Source: Obrimoposthia wandeli (taxonomy: Eukaryota). Taken from it: a stretch of 64,000 nt of DNA. Below the pieces are notes generated by a model. That model saw only the letters and a program-made list of their open reading frames with translations. It was not told where the DNA came from and made no database searches. Both the position numbers and the translations under genes were made by a program. How positions within the stretch are numbered: position 1 is the stretch's first letter; the number at the start of each line of letters is the position of its first letter. The stretch lies in NCBI GenBank assembly GCA_977020255.1, contig CDROCS010000506.1, positions 248,001 through 312,000 of the forward strand, given 5' to 3'. Positions 43,851 through 56,520 of this stretch are shown here, piece by piece.

Positions 43851-44152
43851 GACCACAACTATACTCACAAAAATTATCAAATAACTTCTACGAGCTTCAA
43901 ATATACCTTTGAATGCATAATTTATACTTCCATATATCGTTTGTTACCTTATTTTAATGAACCAATCATTAACAATCAAGCCTTTCGTTGTTAATATTTC
44001 TAGTTATTTATGTGCATATCAGACAAATAATTCCACTTGATATTAGTATTCGATAAATTCTCTGAAATTTGAACTAATAAGTGAGGTTTAGTGGTCTCTT
44101 TTGAATGCCCGATTTTAACCGTTATACCAGAAAACATTGTAATTAAAGTCGT

Positions 44153-44554
44153 TCAATTTGAAAATTTAAAATATGAATGCTTTAAGTTTTTATCTGTGTT
44201 ACAGCTTATACATCTGTACATATTTCTGTAAATCAGTCGATCTAAGCCACGTCTTGGTATGCGAGCGAAGCGTGGATGATTACAACATCTCATATAGCAT
44301 GTTTTTATGTATGGTTTAGATGTAACTCTAAAAAAATAATCGCTCCCTACGTTATCATCTTTACGCACATCATATGTATAACTATGATGTGATGTACCGA
44401 TAGTAATCAATCGAGATGAACGTAACAATTCTAAAATATCGTAAGACATCCCCGAAAGTAGTAGTGTGTTATTTTCGACTAATTCATTTAAAGGTGAATA
44501 CGCTTCTAATAGTGCATCTTTTTCGTCATTCGTTAGTACTATATCTGTAATCAT
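44153..44554 (-). CDS. Orphan hypothetical protein with C-terminal Cys cluster
   Basis: Start moved to ATG 44554 (SD GAGG); C-terminus CYMRCCNHPRFARIPRRGLDRLIYRNMYRCISC; low-GC. Confidence 0.65.
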   Translation of the reverse strand: MITDIVLTNDEKDALLEAYSPLNELVENNTLLLSGMSYDILELLRSSRLITIGTSHHSYTYDVRKDDNVGSDYFFRVTSKPYIKTCYMRCCNHPRFARIPRRGLDRLIYRNMYRCISCNTDKNLKHSYFKFSN

Positions 44555-45250
44555 ACAACCTCTCTTTTTCAATTACATATCCCTTCTGATTACCACCGGA
44601 CCTCAACTAATTCAAAAAAGAGCTAAGGTCTAGTTGCTGTTCGAATACTTGAGTAATTAACTAACAAAACGTCTTTTCTAAGTAAAACATCGGATTAAAC
44701 TTAAAATAAAACTAGACTAGATATAGAGATAAATGCTTTTTATTAATGGCATGATAAATATCATTTATTGAAATTTTAACATTACTTATCATTATATTGA
44801 TCAATTTTAGTACTCCCTTCATCATCTATTGAACGTAATCAGTTAAAAATGTTCCATCACTTCGTTTTTTAATTGCTGAGCAGCGCTTTGTAACATAACA
44901 GGTAATCTTGAAACCTAAATGGTTGAAATGTTGTTTTATTGCGTCACAAAGTAAATGGTAAAAATAATTTTTCAGTCGAAAATAAAAAGCACATTAATAT
45001 TCACATTGATTTCTAACCCTAAAAACTTACTCATTTTTATATAGTTTCCAATCACTGTAAACCAGTGGAATTAAAATATAATTATAAGTTATAACTTAAA
45101 GTACAAATAATTTACTAATTAGTTAGAATGTTATATTTTACAACTTAATTAATCCCCTAAAAACAAAACCTGTACACCATCAATTTTCGACTCATTGATT
45201 ATGTATAATAAGATACATAAATACATGATTTAAATGTAAAATTTAAATGA

Positions 45251-45290
45251 AAAGTAAAAGAAAGTAAAAGAAAGTAAAAGAAAGTAAAAG
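45251..45290. repeat. 10-bp tandem repeat (AAAGTAAAAG)4
   Basis: Four perfect units at 45251-45290. Confidence 0.97.
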
Positions 45291-45369
45291 AGGTGAAAAT
45301 AGCAAAAAATACATGAAAAAATATTTTATGTATTGATTTGTATTGGTTTGTATAAGTTATGTATATATA

Positions 45370-45540
45370 AAGTTTAATAAACGATTTTTATAATTACCAC
45401 TTTTAAACTAAGTTTATTAAATTTATTTTTTAATTACCACTTTTAAACTAAGTTTATTTAAACGATTTTAATTACCACTTTAAATTAAGTTTATTAAAAT
45501 CGTTTTTTGTGATTTCCACTTTAAAACTAAATTTATTGAT
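45370..45540. repeat. Array of about four 40-bp imperfect direct repeats, each containing a TAAACT-A-AGTTTA dyad
   Basis: TAATTACCACTTTTAAACTAAGTTTATT-like units start at 45391, 45431, 45469 and 45510, with a partial unit at 45370. Confidence 0.92.
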
Positions 45541-45580
45541 TTGTAGGTTCGATATACTATATCAGATAAGGAAAAATGTA

Positions 45581-46255
45581 ATGCTTTCAGTTTGTACTGA
45601 AAATGGGGGTAAAAATAAAACAGTAGAATTTATAAAAAAGAATTAGAGTTAATTCTATACTTAATTGATTTAAAAGGAGAATGTATAGAGAGAATTTTTA
45701 CTTGATAATTTATGGAGTAATATTGTTAGTGAGGCCAGTCTAAATAACTTAGTGAAAACAACCAGAGCAAAATTATCTAGCCTTATAGGCATCTCTGACA
45801 TCGTCATAACAGTACATAAAAAAGGTTACCGTATTGATTTGAACACATCATCAGCGGGGCGAATTAACACCAATTATAAAAAAAGAAAAAACCTAACATT
45901 TTATTAACTTCAAGCTAATTTTGTAACATCTATTTTACTTTCATTGATGGTATTTATGATTTTTAATCTTACTTTTTCGTCTGGGCGAGATTTTAAAGCT
46001 ACGGCGAAATTACATCATTACAATAATCTAAAAGTTAATATTTTTTTTATAAAATGGGAGTATAGTTTTTATGCTTACGATGACGATAACCATCTTCTAG
46101 TTCGAGATGTAGGATATAGATTTACAGTAGGCTCACGTAGTTATTTACTTAATACATCAATAATAGATTTCTATAGTGACTTCCCTAATGCTAAGATTTT
46201 TCATTGCAGGAAATGTATGCCTAGTTTAATAAGAAATTATATTTTTAGAAGATAA
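45581..46255 (+). pseudogene. ToxR/TcpP/CadC-like membrane-anchored winged-helix regulator, disrupted
   Basis: Reconstruction: MLSVC..FIKKELELILYLIDLKGECIEREFLLDNLWSNIVSEASLNNLVKTTRAKL..VITVHKKGYRID (wHTH), basic linker, TM FVTSILLSLMVFMIFNLTF, periplasmic tail with CRKC. Lesions: A6 run at 45634-39, AG repeat at 45687-93, in-frame TAA at 45905-07. Confidence 0.8.
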
Positions 46256-46579
46256 CAGCACTCTAAAAAGTTAATGGTTATATTCTAGATCTTTAGCATC
46301 AATAAAGAAAAATAAATGCATTTGATATTGATTCAACAACTCAGTTTACTTACTACTTTAGAGATTAATAGCTTTACTAATCTCAAAGATTATGATACCT
46401 AGCTTATTGATAGGTGGCTTTAAACTACGTAAAAAGAACAAAAAGAAGCAATTGTTTTTTCAGCTGAAGTATTCAAGATATTGTTCTTTTAAATAATAGA
46501 TGGGGATAAATTAATACATCACATTCATACAAGCTTTGGTGATTAAACAAAAGGGCCTACCCTAATAAATCTTATCTTT

Positions 46580-47614
46580 TTAGCATTCCCAATCAAGGAT
46601 AACTTTACCTGACATGCCTGAACGCATAATATCAAAACCTTCTTGGAATTGATCAATTGGGAAATGGTGCGTAATGATTGGTGTTAGGTCTAAACCTGAC
46701 TGAATTAATGCAGCCATTTTGTACCAGGTTTCAAACATTTCACGGCCATAGATACCTTTAATCACTAAACCTTTAAAGATAACATTGCCCCACTCGATGC
46801 TCATGTCACTTGGTGGAATACCTAACATAGCAATTTTGCCGCCATGGTTCATCTTGTCTAGCATATCGCTAAATGCAGATGGTACGCCTGACATTTCAAG
46901 ACCAACATCGAAGCCTTCTGTCATTTTAAGCTCGTCCATCACATCTTTAAGTGACTCAGTTGCTACGTTAACAGCACGTGTTACGCCCATTTGACGCGCT
47001 AAGTCGAGACGGTATTCGTTGACATCGGTGATCACAACATTACGTGCACCAACGTGCTTACATACTGCAGCAGCCATAATACCAATTGGACCAGCACCAG
47101 TGATTAATACATCTTCACCAACAACATCGAATGATAATGCCGTGTGTACAGCGTTACCAAACGGGTCAAAGATTGCCGCCATGTCATCAGAAATATCATC
47201 TGGCAGTTTGAATGCGTTAAATGCAGGGATAACTAAGTATTCAGCAAATGCACCTTCACGGTTAACACCAACGCCTGTCGTGTTACGGCATAAATGTGTA
47301 CGACCAGCACGGCAGTTTCGACAATGACCACACGTAATATGGCCTTCACCAGATACTCGGTCACCAATTGCAAAGCCACGTACTTCTTGGCCCATACCAA
47401 CAATTTCACCTACATACTCATGGCCAACAACCATAGGTACTGGAATCGTTTTCTGTGCCCATTCATCCCAATTAAAGATATGAACGTCGGTACCACAAAT
47501 AGCTGTTTTTTTGATTTTAATCAGAATGTCATTATGGCCAACTTCAGGTTTATCAACCTCAGTCATCCAGATGCCTTGTTCTGGTTTTAATTTAGCAAGC
47601 GCTTTAATTTTCAT
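46580..47614 (-). CDS. tdh: L-threonine 3-dehydrogenase
   Basis: [33 protein letters not shown] and [14 protein letters not shown]. Confidence 0.98.
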
Positions 47615-48807
47615 TATATAATACCTATATCTTTACCAACTTGGATGAATACATCTATCGCGTTATCAAGTTCTTCTCTGCTATGTGCAGCAGACATCTG
47701 TGTGCGAATTCTCGCTTTACCATTTGGTACCACAGGGAAAGAGAACCCAACTACATAAATGCCTTTTTCAAGTGCGCGTTCAGCAAAGTCTGCCGCCACT
47801 TTTGCATCGCCAAGCATGATTGGAATGATCGCGTGATCAGCACCGCCCATCGTGAAACCAGCAGCTTCCATACGCAGACGGAAGTGAGCTGAGTTAGCCC
47901 ATAAAGTATCACGCAGACCATCGCTTTCTGCTAGTAAATCAAGCACACGAATAGATGCAGAAACAATCGCTGGTGCAACTGAATTAGAGAATAAATAAGG
48001 ACGCGAACGTTGACGAAGCCAATCGATTACTTCTTTTTTACCCGCAGTGTAACCACCTGAAGCGCCACCCATTGCTTTACCTAAAGTACCGGTAATGATA
48101 TCGATACGGTCAATCACATCATGATGTTCATGGGTACCACGGCCATTTGCGCCCATAAAGCCAACAGCGTGAGAATCATCGACCATTACCAAAGCACCGT
48201 ATTTATCGGCTAAATCACAAATACCTGGTAAATCAGCAACAACGCCATCCATAGAGAATACACCATCAGTAACGATTAACTTATGGCGAGCACCCGCTTC
48301 AGTAGCGGCGATTAGCTGTGCTTCTAATTCTTGCATATTATTATTTGCATAACGGAAGCGCATCGCTTTACAAAGACGAACACCATCAATAATTGAAGCA
48401 TGGTTTAATGCATCAGAAATAATCGCATCTTCTTTACCAAGAATGGTTTCAAAAAGTCCAGTGTTAGCATCAAAACATGATGTATAAAGGATCGTGTCTT
48501 CCATACCTAGGAATGTTGATAACTTCTGTTCAAGTTCTTTATGCGAATCTTGAGTACCACAAATAAAACGTACAGACGCCATACCAAAGCCATGCGTATC
48601 CATACCCGATTTTGCAGCTTCAATTAGTGCAGGGTGATTCGCTAAACCTAAGTAGTTATTAGCACAGAAGTTTAAAACTTCTTCACCAGTCGATATAGAT
48701 ACAGCCGCTTTTTGAGCTGAAGTAATAACGCGTTCTTGTTTATACAGACCCGCTACTTTTACTTCTTCGATTTGCTCACTGATCTGATTGTAGAATGTAG
48801 AAGTCAT
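47614..48807 (-). CDS. kbl: 2-amino-3-ketobutyrate CoA ligase (glycine C-acetyltransferase)
   Basis: [28 protein letters not shown] and [13 protein letters not shown]; TAATG overlap with tdh. Confidence 0.98.
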
Positions 48808-48969: not shown

Positions 48970-49878
48970 ATGATGATATCGCAAAAATTAATCGCCTTAT
49001 TACCCGACTTGGCGAGTTTTACTTTAGTTGTTCAAGAAGGCAGTTTTACGGCAGCGGCAAAAAAAATAAATGTCACGCCTTCAGCATTGAGTAAAACCAT
49101 TACCCGACTTGAACAAGCGTTATCGATTAAACTATTTGAGCGCACGACCAGAAAGCTGATTATTACCGACGCGGGACAGAAGATTTACGATCAATGTGTG
49201 CCTATGGTGAATGCGGCAAAGCAAGCGGTAGAAATATCCAGTGTCGAACATACCCAAGCCGCAGGTTCAATAACGGTTGCGGCGCCGGAGGCATTTTTGA
49301 ATGTGGTGCTACAGCCTTTTGTCATTCCGTTTTTAAAGCAGTATCCGCAGATCCAACTCAAGTTGCGGGCGATTGATGGGCCAATCGATATCTTTGCACA
49401 CGGTATCGATATCGCCTTTCTATTGACGGATAAACCAGATGAAAACTTAGTGCTAAAAGAGATAGGTAAAACCTGCTTAGTATTATGTGCAAGCCCTGAT
49501 TATTTAAAAGAAAAAGGCACCCCTTCTCACCCCGAACAATTAACACAACACGATTGCCTTTATTTAGCAGAAAATGAAACCGACCACATCTGGGGTTTAA
49601 TCAAAGGTGATGAATCCCATACAGTTACCGTTTCAGGCCGTTACGCAGTCAACCATTCTCAGATGCGTTTAAACGGGGTAATTAATGGCTTAGGTATCGG
49701 TATTTTTCCCGATTTCGTGGTGCGGGAAGCTATCCGCAAAGGTGATGTGACCGAGGTTCTCAGCGGTTGGACGGTTAAGAGTAATTATCAGGGGATCATT
49801 GCGCTGCAGTATGCCCAAACCAAATATATGCCCACAAAGCTCAAAGTATTTATCGATTACGCGATGCGCTTGGTGTAA
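48970..49878 (+). CDS. LysR-family regulator divergent from kbl-tdh
   Basis: GSFTAAAKKINVTPSALSKTITRLE..LFERTTRKL and GLGIGIFPDF. Confidence 0.93.
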   Translation: MMISQKLIALLPDLASFTLVVQEGSFTAAAKKINVTPSALSKTITRLEQALSIKLFERTTRKLIITDAGQKIYDQCVPMVNAAKQAVEISSVEHTQAAGSITVAAPEAFLNVVLQPFVIPFLKQYPQIQLKLRAIDGPIDIFAHGIDIAFLLTDKPDENLVLKEIGKTCLVLCASPDYLKEKGTPSHPEQLTQHDCLYLAENETDHIWGLIKGDESHTVTVSGRYAVNHSQMRLNGVINGLGIGIFPDFVVREAIRKGDVTEVLSGWTVKSNYQGIIALQYAQTKYMPTKLKVFIDYAMRLV

Positions 49879-49916: not shown

Positions 49917-51507
49917 CTATGAAAGTACAGCAAAGAGCCAATCAGGTATAAATAGACAAGCAACGATGGTCATCGCGCCAAAAACAAATAGGCCGTAATG
50001 ACTCGCTTTAGGTTTAGAAAAAAGTGCGGCTTGATTTTTAATGAAATGTTGTTGCTCGATAGAATTACTGCCATAGAAGCGACTCGTCAACACACCAAAG
50101 AATAAGAATGGCACAAGGTGCGGCGGTACCAAGCGGCGAAGAGACCGTGGCCACGATCGGCAAGCTGCAATGAACATACCGCTAGGAGAATACTACACTG
50201 CCGACGATGACCCCTTTTTCATTGGCCTTGTGAAAGAACAACCCCAGTACAAATGACCCTAATCGAATACCAACAAAAATCGACGTCAAACTTGCAATTG
50301 TTTTCAGCACCGATTCATTCGATATGGCGAATAATGCCGGGACAACAACTGCAGCAGCGGCTACCAGACTCATCTTTCTTGCCACAGAATCATAATGACG
50401 TTGTGAACCATTTTTACACACAAAGCGTTTATAAATATCAAAAGTAGCGACAGTTGCCATTGAGTTATAAGTTGAATCTAATGTCGACATTGCTGCCGCT
50501 GCTAATGCCGAAATAACCAGCCCAATAACAATTGGATTAGTATGATTAAAAACAAAATCAAGAATGACTTCATTACTATTATCAAAATGTTGGTTTTGAT
50601 AATAAATACTCAGCAACACACCTAATACAGAGAAAAATAGGTATATAAAGAAAGCACTATAGCCACACAGCAACATTGATTTTTGCGCGTGTTCAACGTT
50701 TTTGGTCGCTAATGTTCTTTGTATAATTAGCTGGTTAGTGCCATAGACACTCAGGTGTAAGAAACTCACCGCGACAACGCCAGCCCATAACGTCGTATCC
50801 ACTCCAAGATCAAAGCTGGTATTGATAATAGTCAGATTATCTGGCGACAAGTATTCTTTGGTATTTATATCCATGAGTAATATACAAAAAATGGCAACAC
50901 TGCCGATCACCAGCACAATAGATTGCAGCATATCGGTCCATATCACCGTCGATATACCGCCAATACACGTATATAGCGCTGTAAATAAGCTGATATAAAT
51001 AATGGCTTCAGAGATCGATATCGGTATCACTTGCACAAGTATGAGTGCTACCGCATATAAGATGACACCTGCAGAGATACATTGAACAACAAGAAATACG
51101 AGCGAATTGATGGTACGAGCATAGATCCCAAAACGCAGTTCAAGATATTCATAAATTGATGTTAATTTAAGTTTGTAAAAGACCGGAACAAAGAAAGTAA
51201 CGGTAAAGAATATGACGATGGGATAGTTCAAATGGACACTCATCGCTTCCATGCCCGAGTTATACACCCAACCTGGCATACCAATAAACGTCATAGCACT
51301 AATATAAGTGGCCAAAATGGAAACGCCGGCTGTAAACCAACCAAATTGCTGCCCCCCTGTAGCGAAGTCATCACCTTTATTATAACGAAAGTTAACTAAG
51401 TAACTTATTAATAAGGTAATAATAATATAACACACCACTACAGCAAGACTTGAGTACGTAACCATTTTCATATTCCTAGTAACATCGCTAATAAATAGTA
51501 ACAACAT
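49917..51507 (-). pseudogene. Sodium:solute symporter (SSS) with frameshifted 3' end
   Basis: SSS motifs ATYISAMTFIG, SIYEYLELRFG, VIWTDMLQ, QLIIQRTL and AAAMSTLDSTYNS. The frame stops at GVIVGSVVFS (50182), while hydrophobic C-terminal sequence (FLFFGVLTSRFYG...LFVFGAMTIVACLFIPDWLF) continues in another frame to 49917. Confidence 0.78.
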
Positions 51508-51549
51508 CTTATCAAAAAATGAGTTTTACGGAAAAATACACCGAGTAAC

Positions 51550-51565
51550 TGCGATATTCATCACT
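51550..51565. promoter_or_regulatory. CRP-like site 1
   Basis: TGCGA-tattca-TCACT (8/10). Confidence 0.5.
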
Positions 51566-51597
51566 AAAACAAATCACAAATGACTAATAAAGCACAA

Positions 51598-51613
51598 ATG
51601 GGTACGCAATCAT
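51598..51613. promoter_or_regulatory. Candidate LacI-family operator
   Basis: ATGGGTACGCAATCAT: 16-bp imperfect dyad centred on CG, between the two CRP-like sites. Confidence 0.4.
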
Positions 51614-51619
51614 TTTAGT

Positions 51620-51635
51620 TTTGAAGTTGATCACA
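51620..51635. promoter_or_regulatory. CRP-like site 2
   Basis: TTTGA-agttga-TCACA (9/10). Confidence 0.6.
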
Positions 51636-51755
51636 GTTCTTTTTTTCCTAAAAATCTATCATTCACCCGAATTCGAACGAAGTGGATGTTAAAACGGATA
51701 ATCGACTTCCTTCCTAAATATAATTAACTGTCCCTATTAAAGAGGTCTATCGGTC

Positions 51756-53051
51756 ATGATTGAACGGAAACATATGAGCGAAGTGCCAATGATTCAGCGT
51801 ATTGCTGCGTACATTGCCATTTTGGTGGGTTACTTTTTTTATTGTTATAACTTTGTAATTATTGATTACGTCCGCCCATATCTTGTTGAAGAATATGACA
51901 ACATTAGCTTAGCGGATACGGCTCAATTTTATACTTGGCAATCGGTTGGTGCGCTTATAGGGGCATTAAGTTGTGCATGGGTTGCATCTAACTTTGGTAA
52001 AAAGTCGACATTGATTGCCATTACCGCCCTAAATGGTGGTGCGACCATTATTAATATGATGTTTACCGATTACGCAACGTGGGCATTAATGCGTTTTATT
52101 ATCGGTATTTCACTTGGTGGTTACTTTACCGTCGCAGTATCAATGATGATTGGCCTATTTACCCCAAGTGTTCGTGGTAAATTAACCGCTTTTGCATCAA
52201 GTATGTTCTCTGTTGCCTTAATGGCCATGGGTGCCTACGCAGCATTTATCACCAGCATTGACGCACCTTGGCAGAGCCTAATGTGGGTTGGTGGTATACC
52301 ACCATTAGTTGCAGCCGCGTTGATGATTTTCCTTTTACCAAACGACAAAAAAGTGATCGCATATGGTGAAGAAGAAGCCGCTGAACAAGAAAATGCTGGA
52401 GCAGAAAAGAAAAAAGGTTCTTGGGGCGAAATGCTCAGTGCTCCTTACCGCAAGCTTACGCTCTCATGTCTATTGCTTGCTGGCCTTAACTTCTATGGTT
52501 ACCAATTCTTTAGTGGGTTCGTAACAACCTATCTAAGACAGGTTCGAGAGTTCGATGGCGCGACCATAGGTATCATTTTCTCTATATCTGCATTCGGTTC
52601 ATTATTCGGCGCATGGGTATGGGGCGCTATTGCGGACAAATACGGCCGTAAAGTTAACGCGCTAGGGTTTATCATCGCCGGTGTTATGGCTTCAGTATTC
52701 TTTGTTGCACCAAGCGACGTCATGATTGGTAGCCTAAATATGCTAGCGATACTTGGCCTTATATACAACTTCGGCTTATCTGCGTCGGCAGTATGGGGTG
52801 GTTATTTCTCTGAATTATTCCCTCCACATCTGCGTAACTTTGGCGCGGCTTTATTCCACGGTGGTCGTATCATCGGCATGTGGGCGCCAATGGTATTGGT
52901 TTACATCCAAGAACGTTCAGACCTAGAGACGGCAATGTGGGGTTCTCCAATCATCTGGATCATTGCTGGTCTACTGTGGTTCTCTCTGCCTGAAACATTG
53001 AAAGGCGGTATTTTCTACAAAGAAAAATCACTGAAACAAGCGACCGCATAG
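51756..53051 (+). CDS. MFS transporter (aromatic acid/sugar-acid:H+ symporter-like)
   Basis: 12 TM; WVASNFGKK, LMRFIIGISLGG, AIADKYGRK and FSELFPPHLRNFG. Confidence 0.92.
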   Translation: MIERKHMSEVPMIQRIAAYIAILVGYFFYCYNFVIIDYVRPYLVEEYDNISLADTAQFYTWQSVGALIGALSCAWVASNFGKKSTLIAITALNGGATIINMMFTDYATWALMRFIIGISLGGYFTVAVSMMIGLFTPSVRGKLTAFASSMFSVALMAMGAYAAFITSIDAPWQSLMWVGGIPPLVAAALMIFLLPNDKKVIAYGEEEAAEQENAGAEKKKGSWGEMLSAPYRKLTLSCLLLAGLNFYGYQFFSGFVTTYLRQVREFDGATIGIIFSISAFGSLFGAWVWGAIADKYGRKVNALGFIIAGVMASVFFVAPSDVMIGSLNMLAILGLIYNFGLSASAVWGGYFSELFPPHLRNFGAALFHGGRIIGMWAPMVLVYIQERSDLETAMWGSPIIWIIAGLLWFSLPETLKGGIFYKEKSLKQATA

Positions 53052-53151
53052 TAACAACCTTTATTCAAACGGCAGGCACCTCGCCTGTCGGTAATATGAT
53101 TTATTTTTTCTAGCCCGTTAGAAACTGGCTCGTCAGCAAAAGAGAGATAAA

Positions 53152-54168
53152 ATGTCTAAATATCAAGAAGCTAAAAAAATAGTACGTAATTATTTCGATG
53201 CAATGGAAAAAGCAACGCACGAAAATGTAGCAGAAGTACTAAAATCGCATACTTCAGAAGACTACCTATGGCGTAGTGTGTACCCATTCCGTGAACAGCA
53301 AGGCGCACAAGCAGCAGCTGACATATTCTGGTCACCAATGATGAAATCAATGACCCGTATGCAACGCCGTCAAGATATCTTCATCGCCGGTGAAAATGAA
53401 GTCGCTGCAGGTGAAACATGGGTGATGAGCATGGGCCATTTCATGGGGCTATTCGATGCTGAATTCCTCGGCATGCGCCCAACAGGCAAAATTATGAATG
53501 TTCGCTACGCTGAATTTAGTTGCGTAGAAAATGGCAAAATCACCAAGACTGGTTTGTTCTTAGACCTTCTCGGTATGATGGATCAAGCAGGTTGTTACCC
53601 ACTACCACCGTCAACGGGTAAGCACTTTGTATACCCTGGCCCACGTAATCACGACGGTTTATTATTCGAAGATGCAGATCCAGCCGAAGGTATTGCAACC
53701 CTAGCGCTAGTAAACAAAATGGTTGATGATCTATCAGCACTTAACGATAGCGGTGCAATGGGTTGCCCACCTGAAGTACTTGCAAAAAGCTGGTCAAAAG
53801 ACATGGTATGGTATGGACCTTGTGGTATCGGCGCATCGTATACGATCCCTCGTTACCAACAACAGCACCAACTGCCGTTCCGTAACAATTTAAAAGACAA
53901 AAAATTCAATGGCCACGTTTGTCGTTTTGCTGAAGGCAGTTTCTCTTGTTTCTTCGGTTGGCCAAACCTTTCAAATACGCCAACAGGTGGTTTTTTAGGT
54001 ATGCCAGGTGGCGAAGTGAGAGCAAACATGCAAGTTGTTGATGTTTATTATCGCGACGGGGACAAATTGTCTGAAAACTGGGTGTTGATTGATCTACCTT
54101 ATTGGTTACAACAGCAAGGCTTAGATGTGTTTGAACGTACTCAACAAATAGCAAACCCTACTCTCTAG
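53152..54168 (+). CDS. Tandem SnoaL/NTF2-fold (ester cyclase-like) protein
   Basis: Two similar halves: FLGMRPTGK...ENGKITKTGLFLDLLG and FLGMPGG...DGDKLSENWVLIDLP. Confidence 0.8.
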   Translation: MSKYQEAKKIVRNYFDAMEKATHENVAEVLKSHTSEDYLWRSVYPFREQQGAQAAADIFWSPMMKSMTRMQRRQDIFIAGENEVAAGETWVMSMGHFMGLFDAEFLGMRPTGKIMNVRYAEFSCVENGKITKTGLFLDLLGMMDQAGCYPLPPSTGKHFVYPGPRNHDGLLFEDADPAEGIATLALVNKMVDDLSALNDSGAMGCPPEVLAKSWSKDMVWYGPCGIGASYTIPRYQQQHQLPFRNNLKDKKFNGHVCRFAEGSFSCFFGWPNLSNTPTGGFLGMPGGEVRANMQVVDVYYRDGDKLSENWVLIDLPYWLQQQGLDVFERTQQIANPTL

Positions 54169-54175
54169 TATTAAT

Positions 54176-54201
54176 AAGCCTGGGCAAATTAGCTCAGGCT
54201 T
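54176..54201 (+). terminator. Hairpin after the SnoaL-like gene
   Basis: AAGCCTGGGC-aaatta-GCTCAGGCTT. Confidence 0.6.
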
Positions 54202-54266
54202 ATGAACAACTTGCCTAATTATGTTATTCTAGTTTTAGTCACCTTACTAAAAATAATAGCGCACTC

Positions 54267-55271
54267 ATGAATATACCTAAAGCAAACGCTACCTCAAAAG
54301 ATGTTGCAAAATTAGCCGGCGTATCTCAATCGACGGTATCTCGTGTTTTTTTGCCAGGCAGCTCTGTCAGTGAAAAAACCAAAAACAACGTATTTGCAGC
54401 TGCCAAAACGTTAAATTATCGTCCCAATGCTTTTGCTCGTAGTCTAACTACCAATGAATCTAAACTTATTGGTTTAGTTTTTCCAGATACTGATTACCCT
54501 TTGCACATGAAAACGCTGCAATTAATATCTAGCGAATTACAAAAAGAAGGTTATTCAGCGGTACTGATCCCATGGAAAGTTGACGATGAAGCACTCCACT
54601 CTATTCCCAATATTTTTCAGTATCGTGTCGATGGTGTGATCGCGGCTTCGGCGACATTCAACAAATCACTTTATGAAGAATGTGCAGAATTCAATATCCC
54701 TGTTGTTCAGTTCGCAAGAGTAGTTGAAGGTACAAGAAGTAGTCATGTGGTGAGTGACAACTACGCTGCAGGCCAAACAGCCGCAAAGCATTTCCACAAA
54801 AATGGCGTAAAATCAGCAATCTACTTAACGGGTGATATACCCACTTTCACTAATAATGAACGTAAGGCTGGTTTTTGTAGTGAGTTTGAAAGCCTGACAA
54901 ATAAACAAGCGCATGTTGTTGAAGCCAGCTTTGACTACACAGAGGCTCTAGATGAAATCAGAGTACTGCTGAGCCAAGTTAACAGACCTGATGGCGTATT
55001 TTGTGCCACCGATAATATTGCAATGGCGCTAATGGATGTGGCTCGTCTAGAGTTTGGTTTAAAAATTCCAGATGATTTACAAGTGATTGGCTTTGATAAT
55101 ATCCCTCAAGCAGAATGGCTAAACTATCAGCTATCTACTTTTAATCAAGATTTTAAGCGTTTGGCACGAGAGTCTGTAAAAATCATTGTCGACCAAATTA
55201 GTCAGAATGATTCGACGCTAGTAAAGCTCATGCTTCCAGCGCATTTTATAGAACGCAAAACCACACGGTAA
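54267..55271 (+). CDS. LacI-family transcriptional regulator
   Basis: ATSKDVAKLAGVSQSTVSRVF, LNYRPNAFARSL, DNIAMA and LQVIGFDN. Confidence 0.95.
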   Translation: MNIPKANATSKDVAKLAGVSQSTVSRVFLPGSSVSEKTKNNVFAAAKTLNYRPNAFARSLTTNESKLIGLVFPDTDYPLHMKTLQLISSELQKEGYSAVLIPWKVDDEALHSIPNIFQYRVDGVIAASATFNKSLYEECAEFNIPVVQFARVVEGTRSSHVVSDNYAAGQTAAKHFHKNGVKSAIYLTGDIPTFTNNERKAGFCSEFESLTNKQAHVVEASFDYTEALDEIRVLLSQVNRPDGVFCATDNIAMALMDVARLEFGLKIPDDLQVIGFDNIPQAEWLNYQLSTFNQDFKRLARESVKIIVDQISQNDSTLVKLMLPAHFIERKTTR

Positions 55272-55593: not shown

Positions 55594-56520
55594 ATGACTA
55601 GAAGTTCAATTCAGTGGTACCCAGGGCACATGCATAAAGCCCGTAAAGAGATCGCGGAAGTAATGCCGCAAATGGACCTCATTATCGAAGTGCTTGATGC
55701 GCGTATTCCTTACAGCAGTGAGAATCCAATGATCTCAGAGCTACGTGGTGATACCCCTTGTATTAAAATTCTTAATAAAAGTGATCTTGCTGATCCGATT
55801 ATTACAGCACAATGGTTAGAATACCTAGAATTAGAAGAAGGCGTTAAAGCCTATGCCTTTACGACGCAAGAAGTGCACGAGATCAAAAAGATCCCTGCCC
55901 TAGCGCGTAAATTAGTACCAAACAAAGAAGGTGCTGACAAAGTAATTAAAGCGATGATCATGGGTATTCCAAACGTGGGTAAATCAACCACGATTAATAT
56001 TCTTGCTAACCGTATTATTGCGAAAACAGGTAATGAGCCAGCGGTAACGAAACAACAGCAACGTATCAAACTGGATAACGGTATCGTATTATCAGATACC
56101 CCAGGTATGTTATGGCCGAAAGTACAAAACCCACTTTCTGGTTACCGTTTAGCATCAACAGGCGCAATTAAAGATACTGCGATTGAATATGATGACATCG
56201 GTATGTATGCAGCTGAATATATGTGTAAAGCATACCCAGAAGCAATGCGTGAGCGTTACAAGCTAGATAACTTAGACAAGACAGACGTAGAATTGTTAGA
56301 AGACATTGGCCGTGGTCGTGGTTGTTTAGGTCCAGGTGGTTTTGTTGATTTAAACAAAGCAGCTGCGATTTTAATCAATGAATTGCGTACTGCTAAAATC
56401 TGTCGTCTTAGCTTAGAAACACCAGCAATGGCTGAAGCAGAGAAACAAGCCGTTATCGAACGATTAGCGCTTGAAGGCGAGAAGATTAAAAAACGTAAGC
56501 CAAAGAAAAGACGTCGTTAA
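55594..56520 (+). CDS. rbgA: Ribosome biogenesis GTPase YlqF/RbgA (circularly permuted)
   Basis: IQWYPGHM, LDARIP, NKSD (G4), GIPNVGKS (G1) and DTPG (G3). Confidence 0.95.
   Translation: MTRSSIQWYPGHMHKARKEIAEVMPQMDLIIEVLDARIPYSSENPMISELRGDTPCIKILNKSDLADPIITAQWLEYLELEEGVKAYAFTTQEVHEIKKIPALARKLVPNKEGADKVIKAMIMGIPNVGKSTTINILANRIIAKTGNEPAVTKQQQRIKLDNGIVLSDTPGMLWPKVQNPLSGYRLASTGAIKDTAIEYDDIGMYAAEYMCKAYPEAMRERYKLDNLDKTDVELLEDIGRGRGCLGPGGFVDLNKAAAILINELRTAKICRLSLETPAMAEAEKQAVIERLALEGEKIKKRKPKKRRR

Follow-up and report, generated by a model that had tools for sequence, protein, structure and literature searches.

A LacI-controlled module of two transporters and a tandem SnoaL/NTF2-fold enzyme on a Moritella-like contig: a candidate uptake-and-conversion unit for a small anionic solute

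The DNA analysed here, referred to as the window, is a stretch of 64,000 nucleotides (positions 248,001 to 312,000 of contig CDROCS010000506.1, assembly GCA_977020255.1 of Obrimoposthia wandeli), and its positions 49,917–55,271 carry a compact gene module in which a sodium:solute symporter (SSS) gene diverges from genes for a major facilitator superfamily (MFS) transporter, an enzyme with two SnoaL/NTF2-like domains (NTF2x2) and a LacI-family repressor. The contig is Moritella-like and longer than 1 Mb, and the window DNA is about 95% identical to that of Moritella dasanensis ArB 0140. Since the whole assembly comprises 6912 contigs totalling 1.35 Gb, with at least 23 loci for L-serine dehydratase, it is mixed or host-associated. 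The genes of the module, together with an aberrant patch in one of them, are as follows:

49917..50177, minus strand: C-terminal 86 codons of the SSS symporter, in a different frame (tblastn with the M. dasanensis SSS, residues ~466–527, frame -2)
50110..50196, no strand assigned: aberrant 87-nt patch that breaks the SSS frame, the sole strongly divergent, indel-rich stretch relative to M. dasanensis
50182..51507, minus strand: SSS symporter, N-terminal 441 codons, ending at a TAG (PF00474, E 3.9e-49; TIGR00813, 248 bits)
51756..53051, plus strand: MFS transporter, 431 aa (PF07690, E 5e-39)
53152..54168, plus strand: cytoplasmic tandem SnoaL/NTF2 enzyme of 338 aa, signature gene of the module (PF07366, 52.1 bits)
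54267..55271, plus strand: LacI/GalR-family repressor, 334 aa (PF00356, PF00532 and PF13377, the latter two being Peripla_BP_1/3)

The Pfam and NCBIfam matches and the coordinates bear out the order of genes given in an initial annotation of this DNA, namely an SSS symporter divergent from MFS, SnoaL-like and LacI genes. That annotation had also described the locus as free of known sugar-pathway enzymes and of polyketide synthases (PKS), and indeed no kinase, dehydrogenase, glycosidase or PKS gene lies between the flanking LysR gene (48970–49878) and ylqF (55594–56520). Beyond these, ordinary housekeeping genes form the outer flanks, namely tdh-kbl at one end and aroG at the opposite end. The kbl-tdh operon (threonine to glycine) occupies 46580–48807 of the window, with scores well over the NCBIfam equivalog cut-offs; its adjacency to the module is coincidental, because the two are not neighbours in other genomes. 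Outside the module, positions 44000–46500 have a G+C content of 24–30% against about 40% around them.

The assignment of the symporter stands as to family (PF00474) but not as to a single open frame, which is interrupted in the assembly. The SSF domain is present, but the frame is broken at 50110–50196, whereas M. dasanensis and contigs from four public runs have it unbroken. The M. dasanensis SSS is an intact protein of 527 aa, to which the N-terminal part encoded in the window is 98% identical over 439 aa; the gene DNA is 95% identical, patch included. The four runs compared over this region (X1, X2, X3 and X5) include the best holder of this DNA and a marine metatranscriptome, and no contig in any of them covers the 87-nt patch. 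In X1 and X5, a contig lacks the 87 nt and has 80 other letters in their place, and in X2 and X3, loose contig ends carry M. dasanensis-type sequence at the patch. As four runs have the intact-type 80 nt and none supports the patch, the break most likely arose as an artefact of assembly or polishing; at most, it would be a private lesion. The other three genes (MFS, enzyme and LacI) each differ from their M. dasanensis counterparts at 27–35 nucleotides but in only 1–4 amino acids, which indicates that they are under purifying selection now; in the enzyme, 31 nucleotide changes within Moritella amount to 1 amino-acid change.

The 338-aa enzyme had been annotated as a double SnoaL-like protein, and the predicted structure agrees with this. 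An AlphaFold2 model built on 80 diverse relatives has a mean predicted local distance difference test (pLDDT) score of 96 and a predicted TM-score (pTM) of 0.93, and it consists of two α+β cones (residues 1–147 and 177–334) joined by a conserved Pro/Gly-rich linker of 30 residues. The N-terminal cone (1–148) matches SnoaL-like chains with VIA Z up to 17.7 (3KKG), while for the C-terminal cone (177–323) the sole C-domain row in the VIA list is the NTF2-like 3fgy (Z 14.1). In the sequence, the N-terminal half passes the cut-offs of PF07366 (28.4 bits; residues 75–145) and PF12680 (30.2 bits, cut-off 27), and the C-terminal half is found by profile only (8YSB, DynA1, E 7.5e-11). The C-terminal Asp...Gln-x-Gly motif of SnoaL is kept in both domains, the residues being D138, Q145 and G147 in the first and E308-N309-W310, D314, Q321 and G323 in the second. 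No signal peptide was found in the 338-aa protein. According to the model, the enzyme would be a tandem SnoaL fold of the cofactor-free type.

A word search returned 2997 homologues, of which those listed are 72–93% identical and come from Vibrio, Psychromonas, Atlantibacter, Serratia, Endozoicomonas, Ilyobacter, Cetobacterium, Clostridium, a deltaproteobacterium and Chloroflexi, and for the wider two-domain family an exhaustive search gave 1254 clusters (50% level). The orthologue cluster includes proteins of V. harveyi, V. campbellii and V. owensii, and a tight orthologue occurs in about 46 of the 251 sampled Vibrionaceae species genomes. The enzyme is still 72–80% identical when that of Vibrio is compared with those of Clostridia, Fusobacteria and Chloroflexi, with the C-domain as the most conserved part (76–89% across phyla). 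The synonymous substitution rate (dS) is saturated, and the nonsynonymous rate (dN) is 0.04–0.19; even between Moritella and Vibrio tapetis, dN is 0.04 and dS is above 2. Since synonymous sites are saturated, the high identity reflects an ancient and very strong purifying constraint, and recent horizontal transfer is ruled out as its cause. The search for a characterised orthologue found none: the protein scores below the cut-off of every NCBIfam model, by sequence the solved structures come no closer than E 0.02, and the database names are generic, 'ester cyclase' and 'polyketide cyclase' being automatic. A feature search of the protein atlas likewise gave only generic 'NTF2 family' clusters. 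In the same assembly, contigs C2118 (4913–12475) and C3649 (87968–89456), which correspond to loci L086–L090 and belong to other bacteria, carry clusters of two or three tandem-NTF2 paralogues (profile E 1e-145 to 1e-8).

Open reading frames were called and clustered in 80 genome loci and then in 164 loci that included metagenome and other fetched loci; the counts from the latter set are lower bounds, as many contigs are short, and related genomes are included. Beside the enzyme, these 164 loci hold SSS in 98, MFS in 97, LacI in 92, a paralogue (NTF2b) in 53, the Fe-S L-serine dehydratase SdaA in 48 and a porin in 42. NTF2b is a full-length paralogue of the enzyme (hhalign probability 96% over 271 columns). 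With the same neighbours in about 100 of 164 loci and in several phyla, the layout lies far beyond chance, and the four genes of the window are thus co-conserved, contrary to one of the outcomes that the initial annotation named as refuting its proposal. The MFS gene is the most constant neighbour, in most loci immediately preceding the enzyme gene, and the SSS gene is found by the enzyme in every phylum sampled, often in the co-directional order NTF2b-MFS-NTF2x2-SSS-LacI without sdaA. Flanking genes vary by genome (zwf/gnd, a sulfatase, a resolvase), so the module is a discrete island. 

The initial annotation inferred a minimal pathway from the four genes of the window; elsewhere the module is larger, with a porin and an L-serine dehydratase in Vibrionaceae or with NTF2b in many anaerobes, and the window holds a reduced form of it (SSS / MFS-enzyme-LacI). 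In Vibrionaceae, Shewanella and Atlantibacter the form is sdaA< SSS< / MFS> enzyme> porin> LacI>, and in Atlantibacter the Vibrio-type set is complete. In vibrios, the 361-aa gene that follows the enzyme was considered as a third NTF2 paralogue and rejected (hhalign probability below 1%); its signal peptide, C-terminal Phe and precomputed Porin_1 match identify it as the porin. The minimal layout is intact in M. dasanensis, and V. cholerae, A. fischeri and further vibrios have similar sets without porin or sdaA. In Clostridia, Psychrilyobacter, a betaproteobacterium and human-gut contigs, the genes run in one direction (NTF2x2/NTF2b-MFS-SSS-LacI). In Ilyobacter and C. grantii, a small DUF6198 or YdcZ membrane protein replaces the MFS, and in Chloroflexi and a deltaproteobacterium, ATP-binding cassette (ABC) systems of the CUT1 type accompany several fused or split NTF2 genes. 

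Several further arrangements were seen among the metagenome and anaerobe loci. The one-direction order NTF2x2-NTF2b-MFS-SSS-LacI is also present on metagenome contigs L135–L139, L147–L149, L172, L176 and L177, whose enzyme is 71–75% identical to the Moritella protein, L176 at least being labelled human gut. In four marine metagenome loci (L101, L161, L184 and L186), the NTF2 halves are separate pairs of 170–190-aa genes beside a CUT1 ABC system and paired Peptidase_M19 genes; such split pairs suggest that the fused enzyme had a heterodimeric ancestor or has a heterodimeric variant. A protein of about 410 aa containing tetratricopeptide repeats (TPR) is interleaved with the NTF2 genes in nine anaerobe loci, among them L127, L128, L140 and L145, and the loci with this protein also include L158, L186, L070 and L082. 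The initial annotation had proposed a marine metabolite as substrate, and a specifically marine role does not hold up, given related loci in Atlantibacter, fish-gut Cetobacterium and human-gut metagenome contigs and a protein named from Serratia.

The regulatory region lies in the divergent SSS/MFS spacer and the SSS 5' end, where three sites can be listed:

51450..51465, no strand assigned: possible auxiliary operator with 1 mismatch, weak, inside the SSS 5' end
51550..51565, no strand assigned: CRP-like site TGCGATATTCATCACT, read from the sequence, in the divergent promoter region
51598..51613, no strand assigned: LacI-type operator ATGGGTACGCAATCAT, a 16-bp imperfect palindrome with central CG, conserved in the divergent SSS/MFS spacer

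The operator at 51598–51613 is the sole exact match in the 64-kb window, and its pattern ATGnnTACGnnnnCAT (or the complement form) recurs in the SSS/MFS spacer of about 30 gammaproteobacterial loci. Upstream of SSS in two Ilyobacter loci, it takes the form of the perfect palindrome ATGCATACGTATGCAT, although the LacI there is only about 33% identical, and in Endozoicomonas the form ATGAATGCGTATTCAT stands between MFS and enzyme. The CRP-like pattern is present in 42 of 55 SSS/MFS intergenic regions, usually 89–99 bp from the operator and here 48 bp from it. The auxiliary-operator candidate is 133 bp from the main operator; as about five one-mismatch matches are expected in the window by chance, only its position is suggestive. 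A promoter/terminator consensus scan of 49.7–55.7 kb gave nothing above shuffled expectation. The conserved predicted operator and the CRP-like site back the control by LacI and CRP that had been claimed for the locus, and by analogy the module would work as an ordinary substrate-inducible LacI/CRP catabolic operon.

The two transporters give the first indication of the solute. Among solved structures, the intact M. dasanensis SSS is closest to the symporter for sialic acid, SiaT (5NV9, E 6e-51), and then to NIS, SMVT and SMCT1; the module's SSS is below all family cut-offs, and its identity across phyla (Vibrio vs Firmicutes) is about 32%. The best NCBIfam matches of the MFS protein are weak and all far below cut-off, and they are the aromatic-acid:H+ symporter family, MhpT, PcaK and a sialate:H+ symporter. 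The MFS is 56–66% identical in Fusobacteria, Terrisporobacter and a cyanobacterium and 33–66% overall across phyla. Both transporters therefore resemble organic-anion carriers (the SiaT/SMCT/NIS branch and the aromatic-acid/sialate-type MFS), which points to a carboxylate-bearing solute and makes a neutral sugar unlikely. The repressor has a helix-turn-helix and a periplasmic-binding-protein-like effector domain (PF00356, PF00532, PF13377); its best NCBIfam matches are RbsR, PurR and CytR, with all equivalogs below cut-off, and it is about 30% identical across phyla.

Optional neighbouring genes supply further clues to the chemistry. The gene after SSS in the Vibrio form, sdaA, scores 654 bits on TIGR00720 (L-serine ammonia-lyase) and is an extra paralogue, 72–76% identical to a second chromosomal copy; it keeps its place by SSS in Endozoicomonas, where the locus is arranged differently, and in the copy transferred to Atlantibacter. 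Its identity, its presence as an extra copy and its constant position behind SSS make L-serine a likely product in the Vibrio form. At 46–58 kb of the window no sdaA was found, and M. dasanensis has only distant (50–54%) serine dehydratase copies elsewhere in its genome. Directly after the NTF2 genes, a corrinoid protein is encoded in 9 loci, some of which also have genes for a pterin methyltransferase, a URO-D methyltransferase and a RACo activator, and elsewhere a MetE-like gene or a P450 takes this position; these neighbours suggest a methyl ether in the substrate. A set comprising a HisD-like dehydrogenase, a short-chain dehydrogenase/reductase (SDR), a bicupin or vicinal oxygen chelate (VOC) protein, an α/β-hydrolase and an HpcH/HpaI aldolase recurs in Photobacterium, Vibrio and metagenome loci and is sometimes joined by DUF1537 kinase, class II aldolase and FucI-like genes, which suggests that a cyclic product with a hydroxymethyl group is degraded further, to pyruvate. 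In a marine deltaproteobacterium, M19 dipeptidases stand alongside split pairs of NTF2 genes. From all these clues, the substrate would seem to be a sugar- or cyclitol-like conjugate that is anionic and carries an amino acid, and possibly a methoxy group.

The reading preferred here, with a probability of roughly 55%, is that the module is a genuine, self-contained and horizontally mobile uptake-and-conversion unit for a small anionic sugar- or cyclitol-like conjugate, under repression by the module's LacI-family protein and probably under activation by CRP, and yielding serine in its Vibrio form. In Vibrionaceae a dedicated porin would carry the solute over the outer membrane, and SSS and/or MFS would take it across the inner membrane. 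The cytoplasmic tandem-SnoaL protein would then act by acid/base chemistry without a cofactor, and the likeliest reaction would be cleavage, by hydrolysis or elimination, on a carbonyl-conjugated ring system. L-serine released in this way in the Vibrio-type module would be converted to pyruvate and ammonia by the co-transcribed extra L-serine dehydratase, and the other product would be expelled or passed to the optional 'lower pathway' (HisD-like dehydrogenase, SDR, cupin, α/β-hydrolase, HpcH aldolase) or, in anaerobes, to a corrinoid O-demethylase. The conversion may take a single step, and the MFS transporter may import or export substrate or product, as proposed in the initial annotation.

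The analysis shows the gene content, the fold, the co-conservation, the conservation of the operator and the purifying selection; the direction of transport, the type of reaction, the release of serine and the nature of the substrate are inferred. Several points weigh against the preferred reading. The chemistry is drawn wholly from the fold and the neighbouring genes. The window, M. dasanensis and every Firmicute or fusobacterial module lack SdaA, so that serine release may belong to the Vibrio form only, unless SdaA is there as a mere passenger. A second importer for the same solute looks superfluous, and the organic acids indicated by the transporters contrast with the sugars or nucleosides that usually serve as effectors of LacI proteins. 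Finally, the SSS gene is interrupted in the window as written.

The MFS matches (the aromatic-acid:H+ symporter family, MhpT and PcaK) also leave room for an alternative, which is unlikely, that the module handles a methoxylated aromatic or hydroaromatic acid (phenolic, quinate- or shikimate-like, or a conjugate), the tandem-SnoaL protein being an isomerase or dehydratase that feeds a ring-cleavage pathway encoded elsewhere. Such a substrate would suit the optional bicupin, VOC dioxygenase, meta-cleavage-type α/β hydrolase (a weak PcaD match) and HpaI-type aldolase, as well as the FAD aromatic-hydroxylase type, the arylmalonate-decarboxylase type and the corrinoid O-demethylase among the optional neighbours, and the occurrence in gut and sediment anaerobes suits dietary or plant phenolics. 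However, all of those MFS matches are far below the family cut-offs, aromatic compounds are not usually handled with LacI regulators and CUT1 sugar-type ABC systems, strict fermenters with only two NTF2 genes have no ring-cleavage route, and the serine dehydratase is left unexplained.

A more specific proposal, judged improbable, is that the module is a bacterial catabolic system for mycosporine-like amino acids (MAAs; shinorine, porphyra-334) and gadusol-type C7 cyclitols. The tandem-SnoaL protein would hydrate the ring C=N or enaminone bond and free serine or threonine, and the paralogue would remove glycine from the cyclohexenimine core; SdaA would use the serine, the MFS would expel or import mycosporine-glycine or 4-deoxygadusol, and the optional genes would demethylate the ring methoxy, oxidise the hydroxymethyl group and open the β-diketone ring. 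NTF2 enzymes typically hydrate or dehydrate cyclic enones (scytalone dehydratase, ketosteroid isomerase, limonene-1,2-epoxide hydrolase). MAAs fit all five clues to the chemistry (carboxylate, serine, methyl ether, cyclic product, M19 peptidases): the transporters point to a carboxylate solute, a serine dehydratase is among the neighbours, the O-demethylase parts and the P450 or MetE-like genes suit the methyl ether, the HisD-like enzyme suits the CH2OH group, the cupin, hydrolase and aldolase suit the cyclic β-diketone, and M19 dehydropeptidases occur in the marine deltaproteobacterial locus, the sugar-type LacI being found with CUT1 ABC systems. The hosts include coral- or invertebrate-associated Endozoicomonas, fish-gut Cetobacterium and a halophilic cyanobacterium, the V. 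harveyi, V. campbellii and V. owensii proteins of the orthologue cluster have been counted in favour as well, and in the part of the literature covered no genes were found assigned to MAA catabolism. The case is nevertheless wholly circumstantial. The cyanobacterial locus has no adjoining MAA biosynthesis genes, its neighbours being radical-SAM, TPR and P450 genes; the module is also present in enteric and freshwater bacteria, and a supply of MAAs is doubtful for Atlantibacter, Aeromonas, a betaproteobacterial metagenome-assembled genome, Bacillota from an electrosynthesis reactor, human-gut contigs and Serratia fonticola. If the proposal were true, the module would be the long-missing bacterial route for consuming MAA and gadusol sunscreens.

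It is equally doubtful that one regulator serves two unrelated functions, in which SSS-SdaA would take up and deaminate serine or a small acid as sdaCB does, and MFS and tandem-SnoaL would act on a different compound, possibly in detoxification or export. In Vibrionaceae, sdaA is co-directional with SSS and directly behind it, and MFS-enzyme forms the divergent transcript; the MFS-enzyme pair is the tightest association and occurs without SSS in the cyanobacterium, and the SSS proteins of Vibrio and Firmicutes have diverged to the low identity given above. This division is opposed by the presence of SSS beside the enzyme in all sampled phyla, often in one operon without sdaA, by the single operator between both transcripts and by the joint movement of the whole set into Atlantibacter. 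Very improbable, lastly, is that the module of this strain is a decaying remnant with an SSS pseudogene and without porin, sdaA and paralogue, as the stop, the frameshift and the minimal gene set might suggest, since the four near-identical public runs have the intact 80-nt version and none the 87-nt patch, the other three genes keep their amino acids, M. dasanensis has the same minimal layout intact, and vibrios have sets lacking porin or sdaA.

The uptake-and-conversion unit favoured here would matter beyond this locus. The 338-aa protein is an accessory gene product with housekeeping-level conservation (about 75% identity among Proteobacteria, Firmicutes, Fusobacteria and Chloroflexi) that travels with its own transporters and repressor, and it is found in the well-studied V. 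cholerae, V. harveyi and A. fischeri and in human-gut Firmicutes without an assigned function. Where these traits coincide, they usually point to new enzymology and to a nutrient that is abundant but has gone unrecognised. Identification of the substrate would annotate thousands of genes, could account for one way in which carbon and nitrogen move through marine and gut habitats, and would give a role in primary metabolism to a fold known mainly from secondary metabolism.

The initial annotation knew of no characterised system with this layout, and a search of part of the literature, curated families and structures found neither such a system nor a function for the enzyme. The new aspect would be the signature enzyme, a tandem-SnoaL protein apparently in primary metabolism for which no characterised relative was found. 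Among known uptake systems, those for sialic acid (the SSS transporter SiaT, the MFS transporters NanT/NanX and the porin NanC) are similar, as a porin, two inner-membrane carriers and a repressor recall the nan loci, but the module is without NanA, NanK, NanE or any other sialic-acid enzyme; sialic-acid or oxidised-chitin (glucosaminate) catabolism, which the similarity of the transporters and the chemistry of serine dehydratase had brought up, was rejected, since no nan, deacetylase or KDG genes occur in any module. The SSS-sdaA pair mirrors the logic of E. coli sdaC-sdaB, although SdaC belongs to a different transporter family. 

Among known NTF2-fold enzymes, the SnoaL/AknH-type cyclases (PF07366) resemble the module enzyme in that each half is a canonical α+β cone, and SnoaL, AknH and IdmH are among the matches. 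The module enzyme differs in its two fused cones, its context of transporters and LacI and its identity of at most about 20% to solved chains, and its conservation is unlike that of secondary-metabolism enzymes. No PKS, tailoring genes or antibiotic cluster were found in the 164 neighbourhoods, which rules out a polyketide cyclase role in the SnoaL/AknH sense. Lsd19 and MonBI-MonBII, the top full-length Foldseek matches, likewise have two NTF2 domains per catalytic unit. However, the TM-score is only 0.31–0.34, with a root-mean-square deviation of 16–17 Å and an identity of 9–11%, so the domain packing differs, and this, together with a context that has neither epoxidase nor PKS, rules out a polyether epoxide hydrolase of the Lsd19/MonB type. 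The tandem-NTF2 iota-carbonic anhydrase, another Foldseek match, was rejected with a TM-score of only 0.25–0.27. Limonene-1,2-epoxide hydrolase, ketosteroid isomerase and scytalone dehydratase belong to the same fold class (the first two match with Z of about 14–15), and, although no sequence relationship is detectable beyond the fold, they offer a mechanistic analogy for the module enzyme, namely acid/base hydration, dehydration and enolisation on cyclic substrates.

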